Source: Trichoplax adhaerens
Taxonomy: Eukaryota > Animalia > Placozoa
Reading direction: 5' to 3'
NCBI RefSeq assembly: GCF_000150275.1
Contig: NW_002061034.1
Location: forward strand, 4,041-18,820
DNA: 14,780 nucleotides
Shown here: positions 1 to 14,780 of the stretch, one piece after another
Numbering within the stretch: position 1 is the stretch's first letter
How the letters are laid out: the number at the start of each line of letters is the position of its first letter
Program-made: the position numbers and the translations under genes
The notes under the pieces: model-generated
The model's input: the letters and a program-made list of their open reading frames with translations, nothing else
What the model was told of the DNA's origin: nothing
Database searches by the model: none

Positions 1-853
1 TTTTGCACATGGGAAGTTAAAATTTCATCAATTACTACATTTTTACGGAGTGTAAATCAGGCGTACGCCCAGTAAACACAAAGTCATAATCTGCATGGCG
101 AAGCGTGGTAAGCAAAGGTAGATTCGACTGTGCCCGTTTTTACAACGGGTATTACGAAGCTAGTGATATTCATAGTGACTAAGTCTTGATATTTAAAGAC
201 TAATTGATAATGATTATATTCATAATGACTAATCTTGATTGCTAATAGCAAATTTCAATAAAAATTATTTTTGGTAGCTAAATTATGACGATAAAAGGTT
301 AACATCTTCACTTCCTACAGCGATAGATAGTATTCTAGATGGACTAATACAAAAAAAGAATGAATTGCAGCAATGGAGCAGCTGTAGGTGTAACATACAT
401 ATGCAGGAGCTGCTGTTGAGCCAAGTTTATTAAAAACACAACTTTATCCATCTAAGGTTAACATAATCAGTACCTTCATTACTGCAGTTACAAATTGCAT
501 GCAATGACTTCATGCAGTACACTATGTACAAAATTATCTAGGGTTGCATAATCTGTGTTGCAAACTTAACTTCCAGTTGCAGTTGTAGGAGCTATATTAG
601 AAATGCTGAACGATACATGTATTTCAATTGGCTGACAGACTTATTCCTATCTTAAAATAGCGACTAATATTCAAAATAATTGCAATAGCCATAGCAATTA
701 GAAAAATACCATTCATCTTCTTTTTCATTTGTAAAACGATACTCTCATATACTGTACTGTATGTACTCGTTTTTCATTTCACTGAAAGGCTTTTTTCCCA
801 GCCATAAAACATAACAAAAACGTTGAAAATAACTATAATAGTAATAACTGATA
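1..853 (+). repeat. Copy A of a near-identical direct repeat (partner 13758-14780)
   Basis: Base-by-base match apart from a few substitutions, one 1-bp indel and a 169-bp internal duplication in the partner. Offset at the start is 13,757 bp. The repeat runs off both window edges. Confidence 0.97.
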
Positions 854-2503: not shown

Positions 2504-2869
2504 CTTAACTGTAACAATTGCAATTCAGTAGTGTAACATTATATATTTTAGTACGTTATACCAAGGATTAGTTCTAATCTATGTAGAGATACGCCTACTT
2601 ATTTCAACTGCATTGTATACGAGTATACACATACATGTATATATAAATATATGTTAAAATTTCGATGCCTAGCAACCTCGTTAGGCGCGAAATTATAATT
2701 GCTTACTTATTACTGAGAATAAAGAGTAGAGAGTATAAATTGTAAAAAAGGATATACCCAAGCACATCGCCTACACACATACTGGACGTAAAATCGTAAG
2801 ATACTATAATCATTACATTAAAATTGTGATATCTCTATCGCTGAAGCCACAAGATGTTAAAGTTAGTTC

Positions 2870-2878
2870 TTATAAAAG
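2870..2878 (+). promoter_or_regulatory. Candidate TATA box of gene 1
   Basis: ttataaaag about 45-50 nt before ATG 2919, positionally equivalent to ttataaag at ~9571 before ATG 9622. The AT-rich background lowers confidence. Confidence 0.4.
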
Positions 2879-2918
2879 ACGTGCATATGGAAGCAATTTT
2901 TCAATTCTTAACAACAGC

Positions 2919-3619
2919 ATGAATCACACAAGTTTATATCTGATAGCCCTGTTTTTATGTCATGCTAGCCTTCAAGTGGAGGGAAGAACAGTTTTCTATT
3001 CTACGTGTAATATTAGTAATCAAGATAGAAATGTGATAATAAATCAAGCGCAGAAGATGATGGAAGAAAGAAATAAGAAGGATAACCCGTTTACACCAAC
3101 TGTAATTGAGTTACTTGTGAAGATTCAATTTAACCGTACGCCCAATTTATTAGGGAATAACATTTTTTCTAGAAACATACGTGTATATATAGCTATAATG
3201 GAATATATTCCGACTGTACTATTATCTACTTCAAGCATGATGGGAATGAATTTGTATCCAGCGACTAAAATGATGCCAACAAGCATTAAATCGGATCGAT
3301 TACGCCATCTAACTATTTCAAAAAAGCATCTTTCATGCAATCCAAACGAAATCTATGATTATATACCTCACTTAGATCCCATTTGTGTCTACAAGTATAA
3401 TTTTTGTTACTTTTTCCTTATTGACCCAACAGATACTCTACTTAATGAGTCATCTACATCGGCTAGAACAGGAATTAATCTTTGGCCACTTGAAAGCTGT
3501 CAGTTCTTCAATCAAAGACATAATTTAATACTTGATAAAGGCCTAGTGTTGCTAATGATCTTAATGGTAGTGTATGCATTTTGGAACTATACATTAAAAG
3601 AGAGAAAAATTCGAGAATA
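2919..3619 (+). CDS. Gene 1, coding exon 1: signal peptide, ectodomain and first TM segment of an uncharacterised multi-pass membrane protein (spliced product 754 aa)
   Basis: ATG at 2919 begins a signal-peptide-like stretch (MNHTSLYLIALFLCHASLQVEG). The exon ends in a hydrophobic segment (GLVLLMILMVVYAFW) followed by GAA TA|gtaagt, a consensus donor at 3620. Clear paralogue at 9622-10397 shares PTSIKSDRLRHLTI and YIPTVLLST. Confidence 0.85.
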
Positions 3620-5290
3620 GTAAGTACCTAAAAATTACAATATTACCGGTACCTGTTTTGTATTAATTTAGTAAAGCTACTTCGAAGGATAATTCGGGAA
3701 GCGACATAAATTTGATTTAGAGATATATTCGTAGCTTTTAGTGAAACTGTCATTTTGTCACATGCACCATATTTTATATTATAGCTACATAATTTCTTCT
3801 TCGGATTAACATCGAGCTATATTCTGGATCGACATATTTGTCTCCATAAATTTTTTGCTGTATCTGTCCGTTTGGAAAACAATCACTATTAAGTTTTTTG
3901 GATCACCTGAAAAGATAATCACAACTTATATTATGTTACTTTAGCTGCGATAGCAATTTAAACTCATCAGGAAGATAATGTAGTCTGTTACCGTTAAATA
4001 GACACTACTATATAACTGTCGTGTTCAAATCACGACAAGAAAACCTGGGTCTTTAAATCCGCATAAACCGTGAGACTACAACAGCCAAGTGTACACATAA
4101 CGGGCTAAGCTCAGACTAGCGAAGCTTGTCTTAGGCTTTAAAATATTTTATTAAACGGAGACAGTCTTGACATTCAAGACTATTAAGCCCTGCAACACGT
4201 GTATACTACTACGGCAGACAGCTAATGAGGGCACCGAGCTTTATATACCCTAGCTCGGCTGCACTAGGTGCACAACTTAGACGAATAAGCCTAAAATATA
4301 TATGGCTTTATGTGGTTCGACTGTCTATATGATTTAGTATGGCAAACGGTGTAAACAACACCAATGAGTTATGAACTAAATAAGAGCCAATTAACGATCG
4401 AAGGCTCGGCATAAAGTAACAGAAATCACAATGTGTTTATAGTTGTCATCTCTTTAAGTAAATTTTTCTGCATAGGGTCTACATCACAGTATGACTAAAC
4501 TATCAATTAAACTAAATCATCGAGTAGCTAATTAATATAAGGTTATTAATTAGCTAGTATATAAGATCTTAATTACTAACACTAAAGCTATGATAATAAC
4601 TAACGGAGTCTGTAGTCTGTCATAATTACATTACTACTTCAGTCAATGATTCTATAATGGCTAATGTTGGCTGAACTTAAAGCGAAATAACGATACCTAT
4701 TGAAGGGAAGGTACCGTAGCACTAAAATTATAAAATCTACCACCGTAGCTCATGCAGTTTCCTTATTTGTCCTACTGCAATGCTATAGTCTGCTCGCTTT
4801 TACCGCTTACGTTGGCATTTAAAGCATAAAATATGGAATGGTTCTTGACCCTTCTATAAATACCTAAACTAAATACTATGATATACATTGCTGAGAAATA
4901 GTACGATAGTTGTCAGTTACAGTTTCTAAACGCGAGAGTCGCTGACGCATACAAATAGCATAAGTGTACCATTGCATCATATCATGTAATATCTGTAAAA
5001 TGCTTTATTTTATATTATTTACAAGACCTAGTTATGGCAATCGCATATTTGCATTAAAGTAGTTTTTCTTGAAACGATTTTTCTGTATTAGCCTTAATAA
5101 TTTACGCACCCGACAAAGCGTTCTTCAATCCATGTTGTGCATGTGTTGAAGCATCTTTATGGCAAATATAATACTAGAATAATTCTCGTAATTTCATTCT
5201 TTCTGGGAAATATAAAATACAGCTTACTATTTTCAATAATTTGAACTGCATATATGGACTAATGCAATTTTCCTATTCCTTTTCGTATAG
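3620..5290 (+). other. Phase-2 GT-AG intron of gene 1 (1671 bp)
   Basis: Donor gtaagt at 3620; branch-like actaat near 5259; pyrimidine tract ttttcctattccttttcgtatag ending at 5290. The join TA|T CAT GTA AGC keeps the frame. Confidence 0.8.
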
Positions 5291-6854
5291 TCATGTAAGC
5301 TCACTTCGTGAAAATCTTATGGTTGTCTACCGAAATGATGACACTAATTTAATGCAACTGTGTGCTGGATATATAATTAAATATATATTTGTGGAACATT
5401 GGCAGATGGTTCTTTTGATTATTCTTTTAGCAAAATCGATCGCTAGTTTCCTTATTTTTGGGTATCTAGGACCTGCATCACGGAATTTCGTAAAGCTTAC
5501 AAAGATTTTATTGCAATGCAGTATATGGAGTTACTATTTTATATTTCTCTATGGAATCGTTTGCATATCGATGCTTCTAGCTACGATATGTTCTATGTGG
5601 AAAAGTAACGAAGAGTCATGCCGATTATTGCAAGTATATAAGCAACATGTCTTTTATAACAAAAAAATTTCATTGGAAAAATACTTCTTTGATGAATCTA
5701 AAAAGAAGCATAAAGGAGATTGCGCATCAGGTTGTTTTAATTTTGTGAAGATAATACTTTGTAGGTTATGGTGGCTTGTGAAGAGTTGGAAGTTGATGCA
5801 ATTTGCTTTTAATGTAGCACAAATGCAAAGTTGCTACACCAGCAATATGTTTTGTTCTAATAAAGACAAATACACAAGCATCACACACTTAATTTCAATC
5901 CTGACATACATTTATTGCGTATATTCAGCCGCAATTATGGTATATATATGCATTTTACTTATTCTTTTATCCATCAAATTTCTGATACTAGATTTACTAA
6001 CTAATATGCTTGTATTATCATGTATTTCTTACCTTATATATTACTGCAGCCAATATTTATATTCAGATAAGAATATTCGTCTATCAAATTGTATAATAAA
6101 TAGTCTACAATATGTAAAAGATGAAACTCCTGACAATCACAATATATCACGTAAAAGTGGATCATTTCAAATTAAGTATGAAGCAACAGCAGAAAAAGTA
6201 AACGTCGACGTACCAGACATGTTAAAAAAATTAAGTCAAGACTTTAATAAGAAATTCGAGGACTTAATGAAAAATAATTTACTCATTACACCAACTTCAA
6301 ATGCCTGCATGATGGTGAAGTATTCGGGTGAAGAAGCTAATCTAGATGGAACGAATAATTTTAAGGTGACTTTCAGTAGCTTCGATGAGGAGTTAGATGC
6401 ATTGCGGACACCAATTGAAAATCTTTTACGCGATAATAGCGATAATTTAGTACGTTACAGCATATTTTTCGGTCAAAGCAATGAAACGTTTACCGTAATT
6501 CCTATATCACTTTTTGATTATTTGTATAATAATGAACCGAAAACTGCTTTACACCTTAAATTTATAATCTGCTATGTCATAATCGCTATAATGTCTATCA
6601 TCTTAATTATTTTTTATACATCCACCAATACTACATATCCTAAAGGTGGTATAGCTCTTGCGTTAATTTTTATTTTGTTTTCTTTTCTTCGGCCACTGAA
6701 TAACGATGATATCGAATCTTTTATCAGAGAGAAAATAATATCTTATAGAAATGGCTATACTTTTAACGATTCATATGCAATCAATTATAATAATAATGTA
6801 AGCATTCCAGTACGAATCATTATTGATTATGATAAAACAGAATTTTTGTATTGA
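5291..6854 (+). CDS. Gene 1, coding exon 2: about six further TM segments with two long hydrophilic loops
   Basis: Open frame of 520 codons in AT-rich DNA. Similarity to the paralogue begins at the acceptor (HVSSLRENLMVVYRNDDT vs HEGSSHEKYTAIYKDDNT). Shared motifs include CASG, LSNCIIN, VDVP, LSQD, KKFE and ITxTS. Confidence 0.88.
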
Positions 6855-6857
6855 CCT

Positions 6858-8222
6858 CCTATAGAGGTATACAGTATTCTAGATGAACTAATACAAATGT
6901 GAATTGCAGCAATGTAGCAGTGAAGCAGCGGTTGGTATAAAACACATAAACAGGAACTGCTACTCCTTTACTTATTTTAAGACAAGTTTATCGAAATACA
7001 ACCTTGTCCAGCTAAGTTTGTCATAGTTAATACGTTCGTTTTTCATTAGTGCCAAATTATATGCGTTAACTTCGTAAAGTACTCTATGTAATTATCTAAG
7101 GTTGCATAACATGTTACAAATTGAAACTCCAATTGTAGGTTTTAAGAGCTTTATTAGAAATGGTGAACTAAACCTGTATTTCAATTGACTGATAGGCCTA
7201 TTCCTGTCTTAATATAGCAACTATTTTTGAAAATGATTAATTACAATAGTCATAGCAGTTAGGAAATAATCTTTCCATCTTTTTCATTTGTGGAACGATA
7301 CTCGTATATACTGTATATATTTTGATTTACTGAGAGGCTTTTCCCAGTCATAAAACATAACGAACATTAAAAATAACTATAAAATTAACAACCAATATTA
7401 GGAAATAATCTCTTAACTCTTTTCGATTTTGCAGAATCAAACTATAACATTTACTTCAGAAATTTTGTAAAGCAATTTTTTATTATCTTCTTTAAATAAA
7501 ATAGTTTGTCTTAGAATTTGGCCTCTCAATTGTAAAAATAAACATTGATAATTTCTTTCAGCTTGTCACTTTAGTAGCTTTAAAGACTTTAATGCGAATA
7601 GCGAGATTTTATCTTAATTGAAATTTCTTCCATGGTAATGTCTCTAAGTAATGATAACAATATTGCAAAGATATTCGTATTGGGAAAAATAGTAAATGAT
7701 GTAGCAGCTGGATATCTTTCATTTGTAGATATACGCACATCAAATTACGATATCTTTCTACAAAACTGTAATCAATGAGATCATGACTGTAACATTATAT
7801 GATTAGTTAACTAGAGTAGCCTGAACAGATATATGCTATCCACTTTGTAAGAACAAGAATCAGATAATTACTAGGTATGTGCATAGTAAGGTATGATATC
7901 AATGTGCTGAGCAATAAACATCTATCTACCTCATCCAGAGATTGGAAATCGTTAAACAATTCCACAGTCGATGATGTAGTAGATGCCTATGAAGTAAAAG
8001 TAATTATATCCATTCAATTATATATTCAATACCTACACTTTTTAGCTTTATTATAGCATAATTTCAGTTCATCTCATAGTGTCTATGGTGTAGACATAGT
8101 TCTAAAGAAACGATAAAGAGATATAATAACCAATAAGTTTACAAATAGACCGTCAGGTTACAGTGGCGAATTCATGAGACAGTTCGAGAAACGTCTAGCT
8201 ACACGCTTAATATCGCACACAC
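6858..8222 (+). repeat. Older segmental duplication, block upstream of gene 2 (partner ~314-2212)
   Basis: Same collinear matches; homology starts within a few bases of the gene 1 stop codon. Confidence 0.9.
7589..7986 (-). pseudogene. Second, more decayed copy of the minus-strand gene remnant
   Basis: 57-bp exon 7986-7930 (ASTTSSTVELFNDFQSLDE) with both splice sites kept; TM-like exon with stops (MISLITVL*KDIVI*CAYIYK*); terminal ITMEEISIKIKSRYSH* with the stop at the homologous position. Confidence 0.45.
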
Positions 8223-9449
8223 GATAGAATCATTATGAGTGCGCAACATTTCTTAGTACAAATATTAGATAAACTCCAACTACCGAGATGATAATGCCAA
8301 TTGAGCTGCGTTCAAGGACTGATCAACTATGACCACATACAAATCACAGAACAGCCATTTACTTAATTACTTGTAATTGCAATATTCCATTTTTTTCCTT
8401 TTGGCCAAGTATGCGTGTAGATCTAGACTGACGTTTTACATGCGAAGACACAGATATAAGTTAAACATGAAGAGCGTAAGATATCAGTCAGAACTATAAT
8501 TTTAAACCTGCTATTATCTTATTAAAGGATAAGCTATGATAATATTAGGGTAACCTTACGTTGGCCTAGTACCAAGTCAATCAGATAGTGTGCAGGTATA
8601 CCAACACATGCTGCATCAAAATCTGGTCACTCTAGCTGCAGCCAGGTATATCAACAGCACAAAGTATACTCACGGACTTTTAAGAGGTAAACTTGCACAG
8701 AAGTTATAACCACGCAGAGTACTGTATACCATTAGATCTGCTAAAGAAATATGAAAAACTTGGTACAATTCTTGACTCAACAGCACCAGCATGTGACAAG
8801 ATACAAACACTGTACCAGATAGTGGGTGGAATTCTACATTCAGTAATGTTACGTCTTTCAACGGTACATCTTTGGTTTTAAAGATAGCACTACATTTCAT
8901 TTATACTTTTATTTAAATATCTAATGCGAAAATAATAATATTGCTATACAGTACTGGGGACTTCGAAGACTAATAGTCCGTAGTAGTAGATTGAAGTTAA
9001 ATCTTGATTGTAACCCAGCCATCTTCGCTAAGTTTTGTTTAATTAGGTTAAATGTTTAAAAAAATAGACATTATACTATACTGTATACTGGACTATAAGA
9101 TCGGTATTACGACGTGACTTGTAAAATAGTTTGGAGCGACCGTACATGGAATGGCGACTGATAGTTTGTATTCGAAATTTGAAAGAAATAGAATTATTCA
9201 ATACTTCGATAAAAGTAATTAAAATATCAAAAGCCATTGCTCAAGGTTGTACTGATCTGTCTGTATGGACTTGGAGCCAAATTGAAGGCAACACAATACA
9301 GTATAGCTGAGAACGTCTTTCAATCATTTGAGAGGACTTGCCACGCCCATATAATAGTGGTCTATTATAAATTGTGCAGCACTGTTTCAGAACCGAACCT
9401 CTCTCTGACAGGTCTAGCAGCACAGTACTCGTTGCCCCTGGCAACATTA

Positions 9450-9611
9450 GCGGGAAAAATTAAACTTAATGTACGGTACAGCATTTATAAAGCGGCGCCC
9501 ACCGCCAATTGCTCAACATTAGCGTGAAAGATTCGGCGGGAAAAATTAAACTTAATGTACGGTACAGTATTTATAAAGCGGCGCATGTGTGTCTTCACGC
9601 CAATTGCTCAA
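9450..9611 (+). promoter_or_regulatory. Tandemly duplicated promoter-like module (E2F-like GCGGGAAA, TATA-like TTTATAAAG) directly upstream of the gene 2 ATG
   Basis: 49-bp unit at 9450-9498 and 9536-9584 (1 mismatch, period 86), each followed by cgccaattgctcaa. Function is inferred from motifs and position. Confidence 0.55.
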
Positions 9612-9621
9612 TTTTCAAATA

Positions 9622-10397
9622 ATGCTTTCCAAAAATTTACATCCAGTAATTCTGATTTTATGTCTTGCTAGCCCTCAAGTAAATGGCCCACCAGTTTCCT
9701 ATTCTCCCAACGATATTGATAATAATTCATTAAGAGATTTGATATTAATTCAGACTCAGAAGATAATAAAGACAGAAAATATGTACGATAATTATGAGTG
9801 GTTCATATCGCAGATAACGACGTTACTTGCTACTAAGAAAATAGAAATGACGGAAAAAAAGTACGAAAATGATGGCCCGCTCACATCTAGGATAATCGAG
9901 TTACATGTAAAGATTCAATTTAACTCCAGTTCAGGCAATAACGTTGTTAAAAACATGACAGTATTTGTAGCTATAATGAGATATATTCCAACTGTATTAT
10001 TATCTACTGCAAGTTTCATGGAATTTGATATGTTTCCAGCAATTAAAATGATACCGACAAGCATTAAATCAGATCGATTACGCCACTTAACAATTCAAAA
10101 AAAGCTTCCTTTACGTAATCTAAACGAAACCTATGGTCGTATATCTCACTTGGATTCCATTTGTGTCTTCGAAGATAATCTTTGTTACTTCTTCTCTATT
10201 AGCCAAACGGATGCTTCACCCTATGGATCATATACATCGTATGGAATAGAAAATAATCATTGGCAATCCGATAATAGTCAGTTCTTCAACCAAAAACCTA
10301 ATTTAATATTTGAAAACATCCTAGTTTTGATAATAGCCTTTATGGTAGTGTACGCATTTTGGCAATATCTATTACCAGAGACGCCAATTCGAGAATA
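9622..10397 (+). CDS. Gene 2, coding exon 1: signal peptide, ectodomain and first TM segment (spliced product 729 aa)
   Basis: ATG at 9622 begins MLSKNLHPVILILCLASPQVNG. The exon ends ILVLIIAFMVVYAFW...IRE then TA|gtaagt at 10398, the same junction sequence as gene 1. Confidence 0.85.
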
Positions 10398-11506
10398 GTA
10401 AGTACCTAATAATTACAATATTACCGGTATCTATTTGCATTTATTCAGTAAATTACTTAAAAGAATAATTCGGGGAGCGAATTATTCTTGATGTAGAGAT
10501 ATATTTGTAGATTTTTGTGAAACCGCTATCCTGTAACATACAGCATATTTTTCAGTATAACTGTATAATTTCTTCCGTCAGGTTTATCCCCCTGACATTT
10601 AACCTACAGTGCGACACTAAATATACTAACGATCTCCCATCGCCAGGAGAAACAGAAACTCAACACTAGTCTCTCTTAGACATAACTGAACCCAAAATTA
10701 ATTGAAAAGTCAGTTAATTTATAATAAATCGCTATAAGCATTAATGATCAGTTTATAGGTAATATTAGAAAACCGAGCCGTTATCTATTAAAAATATATA
10801 AAGCGTAATAGATAACGATATGTAAATATATTTTTAGATAAATTTTTTATGGAATCTATGTTACTACGATAGCTACGCAAAAGTTACTTCGTAACATAGT
10901 CATAATAATTCACGCACCCCACAAGGTCTTCTTTATTCATATTATGCATGTATTGAAAAATATTTGAAACAAATATAATACTAGAATCATTCTCGTAATT
11001 ACATTCTTTCTAGGAAATATTAAAAAGCAGCTCTTTTTACTATTTCCAATAATTATAACGGTATACACGTATATGCACTGTTATAAATCGAAATACAAGT
11101 ACTACTCATCCGTAACAAGAAAAAGTAAAACTATTATAGAAATCGCACATTATGAGTCCACTGTCAGGTTTGTCCTCTTTGATATTGATCTACAGTACGA
11201 TTGTAAGTACTTACGATCTCCTATCATGAGGAGGAACAGTAATACCACCAGTCTCTTTTTAGATAAACTGAATCCGAACTTCATTGAAAAGTCAGTCAAT
11301 TTATACAAATCTACATAAACATTAATTATCAGTTTATAGATAACGTCATACACCCATGCAGTTATCTATTAAAATATGTAAAACGTCGTGGATACATTAA
11401 TATAAACATATTCTTAGATAAGTTATCTTAAAGAAATATGTTACAATAGCTATGCAAAAGTTACTCTGCAACATCACTGATGCAATTTTTATTTCTTTTT
11501 GGATAG
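10398..11506 (+). other. Phase-2 GT-AG intron of gene 2 (1109 bp)
   Basis: Donor gtaagt; branch-like actgat near 11476; tract tttttatttctttttggatag ending at 11506. The join TA|T CAT GAA GGC is in frame. Confidence 0.8.
10577..11475 (+). repeat. Diverged ~320-bp direct repeat inside the gene 2 intron (~10577-10897 and ~11163-11474)
   Basis: Collinear matches gtcaggttt..., acgatctcc..., attgaaaagtcagt.aatttata, gttatctattaaaa, atagcta.gcaaaagttact. Confidence 0.88.
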
Positions 11507-12920
11507 TCATGAAGGCTCATCTCATGAAAAATATACGGCTATCTACAAGGATGATAACACTAGTTTCATGCATCTGAGCGGTGGATGGCTAATTAAATAT
11601 GTATGTGTGATACACAGGAAAAAGATTTTTTTAATTTTTCTACCACTACTATTAATACCTATTTTGGCTATTTTTGGACCTTCCGTAAACCTTCCAGAGA
11701 ATTCATTGTACATGGCTAAACATATATTTTACAGTTGTGCAATCTTATTGGTATTATGGTTTGCACATATGATGCTCTTTATATGTATAAATAACGAAAA
11801 ATCACATCAATCATTTCAAGCATATGAGCTGAAACTTCTTCATAACAAACATGATAGAAATTGTGCATCAGGTTCTAATTTCGTACAGAAAGCCTGGTCG
11901 TTTTTGAAGAATTGGGGGTTGATACGATTTGCTTATAATGCAGCGGATATGCACGGAAGCTATTATCGCCATAAGTTAAATTCAAGTATAGACAAATACC
12001 CAATCATCAAACATATTATTTCAGTACTGATATTTTGCACTTACTGTTTTCCAGTTGCAATAGTTATATATATAAGCTATTTATTAACTTTATTATTATT
12101 CGCATATTTTCGACTAGATTTAATATATTTCTTAATAATACCGTGGATTTCTTACCTTATTTATAACTCAATTAAGACATATAACAAAAGGAATAGTCAT
12201 TTATCAAATTGTATAATTAATAGAATAGATCAGCTCCGAGAAAATGAATTAAGTAAAAGAGGATGCTTTGACATTCCTTATGAAATAATCGGTAAGACTG
12301 TAAAAGTCGACGTGCCAAACGTATTATGTGAGTTAAGTCAAGACTACATTAAGAAATTCGAGGAGTTACATAAAAAGAACGTACTCATTACATCAACTTC
12401 AAAGGCCTATATGGGGATAAACTATTCGTTTGAAGGTGATGATATAAATGTGGCTTTTCATAGCTTCGGTGAAAAGTTTGATGCACTGCTAGCACGAGCT
12501 AAAGCTGCTTTACGCGAAGCCAGAAATAGTTTAGTAGATACGAATTATGAATTTCGCGATCAAAGGTATAGAATAATTCCTAAAACATGCTTAGATAAGT
12601 TGTATAATAATCACAATGAATCAAATATTGATATATACCAGGGCGGTTTTAAATTTAAATTATTTATCGGTTTAGCTAGTATATCAATCATCGGAATTAT
12701 TTTTTGTCCATCCATAAATGGATATCATGTATTAATGATAACTTTAGCATTAACTTTATTTTGGTGTTTTTTTATACCGCCATCGAATAATGACAATATC
12801 CAAACTATTGTCAACTCAAATATAAAATATTGCGATTATAGAAAGGATCGTAATGTTAATAATTTTAATTTTAATTTTGACAATAACCAGCAAAAGCAAC
12901 GTCTCCAAACTACAGTATAA
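11507..12920 (+). CDS. Gene 2, coding exon 2: multi-pass TM region, paralogue of 5291-6854
   Basis: Open frame of 470 codons, collinear with gene 1 exon 2 and with the same pattern of hydrophobic segments. Confidence 0.88.
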
Positions 12921-13259
12921 TTCGTTATCAGTAATGACCAAATAGAATTATTGCTTGAATAAGATAAAATTTATTTAATTAATTTTCGAAATATACTGCT
13001 CTTAGTAGTAGCTTTACTTCAATATTGAAGCAAAATTACCTACAAAATTTGTGTTATTGAAAAAATTATTGGTCATGATGGAACAGAATTACTGTATTAA
13101 TTTCGAATAGATATTATTCTTACTAATAATTATTAATCATTCTTACAAATAAAAACATCATTTATGTTGTTGAGTCGATTTCAAAACTAAATGTTATGTT
13201 ATTAAGTTCATATTTACAAAATATCAAAATTTAATTTCAAATTTTATTGCATTATGAAT

Positions 13260-14075
13260 TTGTGATATGTAAAGGAGTAATTGTCATATTACTACTCAGC
13301 AATGGTTGATATAACTTTGATCTGTCCAGTAGCATTATTCTTCACATTAGGATATGTAGGGCAGATATTATAATTGCCGAATTATTATCAAAGACTGTAA
13401 TAAGGTTTCATCGGTGAATGCATCATTGAAAAGTAGTATTCTAGAAGCATAGTTGTGAATATAGTAGTGCCCGGCTATTACCGGGATATATATAATGTCG
13501 AATGGTAATACTATCTGTTAATTATTAACAAATCGATACACTATCGTAAACCGTCAGCAAAGCGACGGGAGTTTGTACTAGTGATAATAAAATGTCTAGC
13601 AAAATACTCGGAGTGCGTAGTGTACTGCACTTCTTTTCCAGCGTAGATGATAATATATATATACAATATACGAGTATATAATTTAGACTGTCCTCTCTTT
13701 CTGTTGTCAGAGCTGTACTACTACTGTATCATCAATTGCGATAGATTGGCATTACTATTTTGCACATGGAAAGTTAAAATTTCATCAATTACTACATTTT
13801 TACGGAGTGTAAATCAGGCGTACGCCCAGTAAACACAAAGTCATAATCTGTATGGCGAAGCGTGGTAAGCAAAGGTAGATTCGACTAGTGCCCGTTTTTA
13901 CAACGGGTATTACGAAGCTAGTGATATTCATAGTGACTAAGTCTTGATGTTTAATGACTAATTGATAATGATTATATTCATAATGACTAATCTTGATTGC
14001 TAATAGCAAATTTCAATAAAAATTATTTTTGGTAGCTAAATTATGACGATAAAAGGTTAACATCTTCACTTTCTA
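13260..14075 (-). pseudogene. Cadherin-repeat-like gene remnant (partly repeated at ~40-315)
   Basis: Frameshifted or stopped peptides in the order expected for cadherin repeats: HYEYNHYQLVIKHQD...LPRF.(DYDFVF), then PGTTIFT...YYSL...NNATGQIKVISTIAE**YDNYSFT. Recognised by eye only. Confidence 0.4.
13514..13581 (+). mobile_element. Helitron-type 3' terminus, possibly a complete 68-bp mini-element
   Basis: GC-rich hairpin ccgtc(a)gc-aaa-gcgacgg at 13551-13568, 9-nt spacer, CTAG at 13578-13581 followed by T. Candidate 5' end A|TC at 13513/13514 is uncertain. Confidence 0.6.
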
Positions 14076-14780
14076 CAGCGATAGATAGTATTCTAGATGG
14101 ACTAATACAAAAAAAGAATGAATTGCAGCAATAGAGCAGCTGTAGGTGTAACATACATATACAGGAGCTGCTGTTGAGCCAAGTTTATTAAAAACACAAC
14201 TTTATCCATCTAAGGTTAACATAATCAGTACCTTCATTACTGCAGTTAAAAATTGTATGCAATGACTTCATGTAGTACACTACGTACAGAGCAGCTGTAG
14301 ATGTAACATACATATACAGGAGCTGCTGTTGCAATACTTATGTTGAGCTAAGTTTATTAAAAACACAACTTTATCCATCTAAGGTTAACATAGTCAGTAC
14401 CTTCATTACTGCAGTTAAAAATTGCATGCAATGACTTCATGCAGTACACTATGTACAAAATTATCTAGGGTTGCATAATCTGTGTTGCAAACTTAACTTC
14501 CAGTTGCAGTTGTAGGAGCTATATTAGAAATGCTGAACGATACATGTATTTCAATTGGCTGACAGACTTATTCCTATCTTAAAATAGCGACTAATATTCA
14601 AAATAATTGCAATAGCCATAGCAATTAGAAAAATACCATTCATCTTCTTTTTCATTTGTAAAACGATACTCTCATATACTGTACTGTATGTACTCGTTTT
14701 TCATTTCACTGAAAGGCTTTTTTCCCAGCCATAAAACATAACAAAAACGTTGAAAATAACTATAATAGTAATAACTGATA
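13758..14780 (+). repeat. Copy B of the near-identical direct repeat (partner 1-853)
   Basis: Starts ttttgcacatgg..., ends ...ataactgata. Length 1023 = 853 + 169 + 1. Confidence 0.97.
14133..14456 (+). repeat. Tandem duplication, 155 bp + 169 bp
   Basis: agagcagctgtag... starts at 14133 and again at 14288. The second unit has a 14-bp insertion (caatacttatgttg). Single copy at ~375-529. Confidence 0.95.

Follow-up and report, generated by a model that had tools for sequence, protein, structure and literature searches.

Two tandem two-exon genes of Trichoplax adhaerens and a candidate placozoan family of predicted seven-helix surface proteins

The window analyzed here is a 14,780-nt stretch of Trichoplax adhaerens (H1) DNA (G000:C1323:4041-18820), in which four open reading frames (ORFs) are the exons of two tandem paralogous genes. 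Each gene consists of two exons and both are intact; the upstream one is referred to as gene 1 and the downstream one as gene 2, and coordinates are those of the whole window unless a contig is named. On balance, the data are best explained by a placozoan-specific, diversifying family of surface sensors, with gene 2 under selection and the locus structurally polymorphic. The gene structure and the family membership, taken jointly, are very likely to be correct, and the surface-sensor function of the predicted products is put forward tentatively.

Animals without neurons, placozoans can detect food, microbes, and other placozoans, and lineage-specific G protein-coupled receptors (GPCRs) make up most of the sensory repertoire known from them. 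If the favored explanation is true, approximately 28 seven-helix surface proteins would constitute a second class of receptors or channels, unrelated to GPCRs and absent from the other phyla searched. The sequences themselves were already public; new here are the definition of the family, its predicted topology, the lack of detectable relatives, and the evolutionary pattern.

Structure of the two genes and of their predicted products

Six ORFs of at least 80 amino acids (aa) were found in the window, the GC content of which varies between 28% and 37%, and four of them form gene 1 and gene 2, both on the forward strand. Exon 1 of gene 1 (2919..3619; 233 codons plus 2 nt), delimited via translation, the donor site, and hydropathy, is followed by an intron of 1671 nt (3620..5290, GTAAGT...TATAG) and by exon 2 (5291..6854; 1 nt plus 520 codons and the stop). 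In gene 2, exon 1 (9622..10397; 258 codons plus 2 nt) encodes the signal peptide, the ectodomain, and the first transmembrane segment (TM1), the intron spans 1109 nt (10398..11506, GTAAGT...GATAG), and exon 2 (11507..12920; 1 nt plus 470 codons and the stop) encodes six TM segments, the cytosolic alpha/beta domain, and a C-terminus ending with QTTV (12906-12917). The donor is the same in both genes, ATTCGAGAATA followed by GTAAGT (at 3619/3620 and 10397/10398), and both acceptors consist of a pyrimidine-rich stretch and AG, the last base of which is at position 5290 in gene 1 and 11506 in gene 2. Both joins are in phase 2 and in frame (..IRE-Y-HVSS.. for gene 1 and ..IRE-Y-HEGS.. for gene 2), and the predicted spliced products comprise 754 and 729 aa, respectively.

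The products of the first exons are 47% identical (E 6e-68) and those of the second exons 34% identical (E 2e-62). The starts of the introns and the flanks of the two genes are likewise duplicated, with 71-79% DNA identity; since introns and flanks were copied besides the exons, a tandem duplication of the whole gene must have taken place. With a stop frequency of 0.072 per codon in the non-coding frames of the window, the probability that open frames of 233-520 codons occur by chance was estimated as 3e-8 to 1e-17. Two repeats were also noticed within the introns: a segment of approximately 165 nt just upstream of the acceptors is common to both of them (5089-5252 and 10897-11065, 79% identity), and the gene-2 intron carries an internal duplication (10577-10897 resembles 11163-11474 at 75% identity).

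Gene models in public databases have the same exon joins. The MAKER model TrispH2_011943/011916 (754 aa; P0001) of Trichoplax sp. H2 (H2) is 99% identical to gene 1 (230/233 residues, corresponding to its residues 1-233, and 516/520 residues match) and has exactly the predicted gene-1 join. The JGI model TRIADDRAFT_62520 (445 aa; P0012) starts at the predicted gene-2 start and uses exactly the predicted gene-2 join. Two further introns of this model, which begin at a chance GTATGT and cut out the TM blocks, were rejected because the skipped stretches are open (chance probability 3e-7), conserved in the paralogue, and kept in the H2 models. H2 gene 2 was annotated as two genes, TrispH2_011917 and TrispH2_011918, and yet a single unbroken frame of 470 codons spans its exon 2. 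The public gene-2 models look wrong in both genomes (L048:7191-7928 and L048:9001-10413 in H2; window position 11601 in H1). Judged from the DNA together with the gene models, the predicted splicing is well supported, and the preliminary description, which had resolved the four ORFs into two paralogous genes with in-frame phase-2 joins, agrees with the splice sites, the paralogy, and the public models. Its further claim that the protein is unrecognized holds as far as no characterized family was found, but both genes had already been deposited as hypothetical proteins and the ectodomain of a sister branch is catalogued as DUF8415. No paper or supplement naming these gene identifiers or DUF8415 was found in the literature searched.

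The membrane topology was analyzed via Kyte-Doolittle hydropathy scans, which revealed in both genes an N-terminal signal-like segment and seven TM segments, of which one lies at the exon-1 end and six are encoded by exon 2. In gene 1, the predicted signal peptide (aa 1-22, nt 2919-2984) precedes an ectodomain with N-glycosylation sequons (N-x-S/T; aa 23-203) and TM1 (aa 204-226, nt 3528-3596). Exon 2 continues with TM2-3 (5394-5597), a basic cytosolic loop of approximately 95 aa after TM3 with a CASG motif and amphipathic helices (5598-5882), the TM4-5 hairpin (5883-6041), a loop of approximately 167 aa after TM5 forming the putative cytosolic alpha/beta domain (6042-6542), the TM6-7 hairpin (6543-6704), and the C-terminal tail (6705-6851). 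The outer turns of the TM4-5 and TM6-7 hairpins comprise only 2-6 residues, and charged K and D residues are present within TM5 of gene 1. When seven TM segments with the N-terminus outside are assigned, the K+R counts reach 7/16/19 in the inside loops and 3/0/0 in the outside loops.

Seven TM segments in the N-out/C-in orientation are predicted because the hydropathy, the loop charges, and the helices in the AlphaFold model of a relative, TrispH2_004921 (described below), agree. The whole layout, composed of a cleavable signal peptide, a glycosylatable ectodomain of approximately 180 aa, seven TM segments oriented N-out/C-in, and two large cytosolic inserts, is considered probable. The TM count made by eye before (one in exon 1 and about six in exon 2) was thus reproduced in both genes, as were the orientation and the long cytoplasmic loops after TM3 and TM5. 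Six of the 14 known C-termini of the family described below have the form S/T-x-V/I/L resembling class I PDZ ligands (QTTV, ETIV, ESAV, VTFV, LTAV, and LTVV), a count that is not independent evidence since the members are related.

The wider family and the search for known relatives

The search of the 105.6-Mb assembly (1414 contigs) with the exon-2 product detected distantly similar open frames on scaffold C1411, each encoding 574-610 aa (E 1.6e-9 to 1.2e-6). A full-length distant member, TrispH2_004921 (795 aa; P0009), has the same body preceded by a signal peptide, an ectodomain rich in cysteines, and TM1, and its ectodomain corresponds to Pfam PF28478 (DUF8415) according to the precomputed annotation. 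In the genome, 26 matches to the exon for the DUF8415-type ectodomain and 35 matches to the body exon were obtained, clustered in tandem on C1411 (1.57-1.60 and 2.04-2.19 Mb), C1399 (0.37-0.43 Mb), and C1397. The three family loci examined in full all had the same two-exon layout. The intron of TrispH2_004921 occupies the equivalent position in phase 2 (GAAGC/GTAAGC ... TATAG/G), approximately 8-10 residues past TM1 in both window-type and DUF8415-type genes. The window introns (1.1-1.7 kb) exceed the two measured introns of the sister subfamily (~360 bp and ~850 bp).

The comparison of window-type and DUF8415-type exon-2 profiles with hhalign gave a probability of 99% (E 7e-18, 333 columns). 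The window-type ectodomain did not match DUF8415 either in hhalign (probability 0.6%) or in hmmsearch with a profile of 20 DUF8415-type exons (approximately 2 bits), and it lacks the conserved cysteines, at least six of which are invariant in the DUF8415 ectodomain. Helices and strands follow one another similarly in the models of the two ectodomains, which was considered as a sign of kinship and found only suggestive, because one of the models is poor. The window ectodomain would be either different from that of the sister branch or diverged past recognition. Since the body is homologous and the DUF8415 ectodomain is not recognizable, the window genes are regarded as relatives of the family body and not as DUF8415 members. 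A maximum-likelihood tree joined H2 gene 2 with gene 1 and gene 2 in one clade (support 100/100), the branch to which measures 1.74 substitutions per site; according to these comparisons the window pair is an outlying, long-branch offshoot of a predicted family of approximately 28 two-exon genes.

The DUF8415 multi-pass proteins (such as TrispH2_004921 and TRIADDRAFT_55378, all uncharacterized) share with the window genes the order of parts, the two exons, the phase-2 intron, and the clustering in tandem. They differ from the window genes in the cysteine-rich ectodomain, a hydrophobic helix (residues 384-406 of TrispH2_004921), and a stripe of three (near-)invariant residues, Q468, R472, and T476 of TrispH2_004921, spaced i/i+4/i+8 along the same face of a membrane helix. 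This Q/R/T stripe, which could form a polar site within the membrane, is missing from the window genes.

In the searches for relatives, the whole-protein analyses were run on the database proteins TrispH2_011943, TrispH2_004921, and TRIADDRAFT_62520, and the window exons were searched singly. Among 1.84 billion representative proteins, phmmer found six matches to TrispH2_011943. Five of them come from Trichoplax sp. H2 and the sixth from metagenome contigs that also bear DUF8415-type genes and were taken as another placozoan. Word-indexed protein searches returned only Trichoplax or placozoan-like matches. Restriction to placozoans therefore appears strong for the window type; for the whole family it is provisional since the DUF8415 subfamily was searched with the word-indexed tool only.

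The Pfam library, scanned without the PF28478 model, gave no match for the four exon products, the sister-subfamily proteins, or any of the 49 aligned family sequences (no 7tm family at E<=0.05). Profile searches of the PDB with four family alignments yielded no matches at E<=1, and the motifs DRY, NPxxY, and CWxP were not found in the four exon products with regular expressions. The ESM Atlas, queried by features and by structure with TrispH2_011943 and TrispH2_004921, produced no usable match (TM-score of at most 0.22 in the fold search).

An AlphaFold2 model of TrispH2_004921, built on an alignment of 49 paralogue rows, reached a mean predicted local distance difference test (pLDDT) of 83.1 and a predicted TM-score (pTM) of 0.78. 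In this model, the ectodomain is of the alpha/beta type, TM1 is accompanied by a cytosolic beta-hairpin and by helical TM hairpins, and the cytosolic domain has the order beta-beta-alpha-beta-beta-alpha. The fold comparison proposed in the preliminary description was carried out with this whole model: Foldseek against the PDB gave no match at E<=0.001, with the GPCR rows inside the noise band of the tool, and the VIA wide and re-rank searches gave generic helical matches only; single domains were not searched in either case, and remote kinship of one single domain to a known fold may still exist. Altogether, no characterized family is detectably related to the predicted products by sequence or by whole-model fold, and the view that they carry no GPCR motifs and match no known family, formed before from the letters alone, stood up to the motif, Pfam, PDB-profile, phmmer, and fold searches.

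Divergence of gene 2 and structural variation at the locus

Comparison of the window with the H2 contig L048 showed that a hyper-divergent block (9514..12981) coincides with gene 2. Its DNA identity between H1 and H2 is 87.4%, against 98.3% for gene 1 and the flanks. The number of differences per 100 nt is 0-5 in most of exon 1, about 5 in the intron, and 10-25 in exon 2, interrupted in the latter by a calmer stretch at nt 12214-12413 (3-6%). For exon 2, three methods gave 0.206-0.216 nonsynonymous (dN) and 0.10-0.13 synonymous (dS) substitutions per site, corresponding to omega (dN/dS) of 1.6-2.2, with omega of approximately 2 in the half encoding TM2-5; in exon 1 omega was 1.1-1.9. The intron divergence was 0.054, so exon-2 nonsynonymous sites diverged 3.9 times as much as the intron (Fisher p 6e-21) and also more than the synonymous sites (p 0.011). 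The gene-2 ORFs are intact in both H1 and H2, and the exon-2 proteins are 64% identical. The genome-wide H1-H2 means are 0.024 for dS and 0.37 for dN/dS (PMC6057997).

In the sister subfamily, the H1 and H2 versions of the genes are 99-100% identical. Gene 1 differs from its H2 counterpart by seven nonsynonymous and one synonymous changes, and from a second H1 copy by five and none, respectively; its intron is more diverged than its exons between the haplotype copies. These patterns lead us to infer that gene 2 evolves under diversifying or balancing selection. An exon-2 protein identity of 64% set against the genome-wide dS, together with greater divergence of the exons than of the intron, is the type of signature found at recognition loci, and it offers an entry point testable via expression, localization, and allele surveys.

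The locus also varies in its arrangement. Positions 1..853 of the window repeat the sequence 3' of gene 2 (96-98% identical to 13758-14780), and the start of the 18.8-kb scaffold (G000:C1323:1-4040) is a 99.8% copy of window positions 9325-11109, which hold exon 1 of gene 2 and a portion of the intron; a gap of 2255 N comes after it. These repeats suggest either that gene 1-gene 2 units are arrayed in tandem, in two or more copies, or that two haplotypes were assembled together or mis-joined. On the 9.7-Mb scaffold C1413 (104000-116500, compared with window positions 2620-14288), gene 1 with its flanks is present a second time, at 98.7% identity. The place of gene 2 is taken there by approximately 3 kb of unrelated sequence, a short tandem-repeat ORF, and a third paralogue (TrispH2_012233 type) reduced to its C-terminal 226 aa. 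In H2, two contigs (L047 and L048) carry two arrangements, gene 1 with gene 2 and gene 1 with the third paralogue. As the same two arrangements occur in H1 and H2, this looks like a structural polymorphism common to both lineages.

Candidate functions

The proposal that the products act at the cell surface as sensors of outside cues, which might be chemical, microbial, or of the self/non-self kind, draws on the protein architecture, the expansion of the family in tandem, its restricted distribution, a variable ectodomain, the faster-than-intron change with frames kept open, and the S/T-x-V tails. The variable ectodomain and the outer ends of the helices would bind the cue, and the cytosolic parts, a better-conserved alpha/beta domain and a tail often ending in S/T-x-V, would relay the signal or anchor the protein to a scaffold. 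A more specific version, in which placozoans, animals lacking nerves, invented a seven-helix receptor class with a fold apart from GPCRs and known channels, and gene 2, with exons changing several-fold faster than its intron and gene content varying between haplotypes common to the two Trichoplax lineages, is a highly polymorphic recognition gene (for self/non-self, microbes, or food) under diversifying or balancing selection, seems to us rather doubtful in its entirety.

Several observations weigh against the favored explanation. The functional part draws solely on architecture and evolutionary pattern, and no transcript contig encoding TrispH2_011943 exactly was found. The confident AlphaFold model is that of a relative, the model of the window-type protein itself being poor (15 rows, pLDDT 49.6). 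The extra hydrophobic helix of the sister subfamily (TrispH2_004921 384-406) could be an eighth TM segment; in the window genes the equivalent helix carries charges and is amphipathic, and the loop charges favor seven predicted TM segments over eight. Gene 1 ends with EFLY instead of an S/T-x-V motif, and its total of 12 nonsynonymous changes versus 1 synonymous change fits relaxed constraint too. Finally, the H1-H2 contrast in gene 2 could stem from a comparison of non-orthologous array members or from gene conversion, although both are disfavored because no donor paralogue was found in the genome search of H1 and between those two copies the intron has diverged far less.

The last two points are extended in the view that the locus is dispensable or decaying lineage-specific DNA, in which dN/dS of at least 1 reflects relaxed constraint and the gene-2 divergence reflects non-orthology or gene conversion. 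The excess of nonsynonymous changes in the gene-1 exons (12/13), the alternative haplotype on C1413 with only a truncated third paralogue instead of gene 2, the array-like repeats on the scaffold, and the fact that no expression evidence was found are all compatible with such decay. We nevertheless give it little credence. All four exons stay open in DNA of 32% GC, at the chance probabilities given above, despite divergence to 34-47% identity, and gene 2 is open in H1 as well as in H2; the hydrophobic segments and the cytosolic domain are kept in all copies. Conversion in the H1 genome lacks a donor, and nonsynonymous divergence about four times that of the intron within the same two copies is impossible by neutral decay.

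Among the alternatives to the surface-sensor proposal that assume functional proteins, a role as subunits of ion channels or transporters in the style of insect odorant and gustatory receptors, with helices of several subunits lining a pore and the cytosolic domain gating or assembling it, is improbable, though it deserves more weight than decay. It would accommodate the lack of G-protein-coupling motifs, the two large structured cytosolic inserts, the Q468/R472/T476 stripe on one membrane-helix face of the DUF8415 subfamily, and the charged K and D in TM5 of gene 1. The insect receptor channels likewise have seven helices, form large, fast-evolving, lineage-specific tandem families, and are unrelated to GPCRs. 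They are oriented N-in/C-out and possess neither a signal peptide nor an ectodomain, unlike the window proteins with their predicted signal peptide, sequon-bearing ectodomain, and loop charges fitting N-out/C-in, and no structural match to them appeared among the Foldseek and VIA rows for the whole TrispH2_004921 model.

Highly divergent GPCRs, whose seven-TM bundle drifted past recognition and gained long loop insertions, have about as slight a chance as decay of being the correct explanation. Like GPCRs of classes A, B, C, F, and adhesion type, the window proteins are predicted to be N-out/C-in with seven helices and an N-terminal ectodomain, and both groups show lineage-specific tandem expansion. 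In the searches made here the family nevertheless showed no similarity to GPCRs above background, either in sequence or, for the whole TrispH2_004921 model, in fold: none of the 49 family sequences matched a Pfam 7tm family, the three canonical motifs are lacking, and the GPCR rows of the Foldseek search stayed inside the noise band. Moreover, its outer turns are very short and structured cytosolic inserts of 95 and 165 aa occupy places where GPCR loops are short.

Proteins of the GOST type (TMEM87, GPR107/108, GPR180, and Wntless) also possess a signal peptide, together with a domain of approximately 200 aa on the luminal or extracellular side and a body of 7-8 TM segments. These families are conserved, single-copy housekeeping genes with a GOLD beta-sandwich. 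Unlike them, the window family forms fast-evolving arrays, and the ectodomain of TrispH2_004921 was modeled as alpha/beta instead of a GOLD beta-sandwich. No GOST chains were present among the Foldseek and VIA rows obtained with the whole-model query, in which the ectodomain was not searched alone.

Rfam and tRNA scans of the window were both empty. Inside the family cluster on C1399 we noticed an intact ORF of 424 aa resembling a bacterial MurA (UDP-N-acetylglucosamine 1-carboxyvinyltransferase), located on the forward strand at approximately G000:C1399:365584-366858 (L044:1585-2859), which could represent either a symbiont-to-host transfer or contaminating bacterial DNA.

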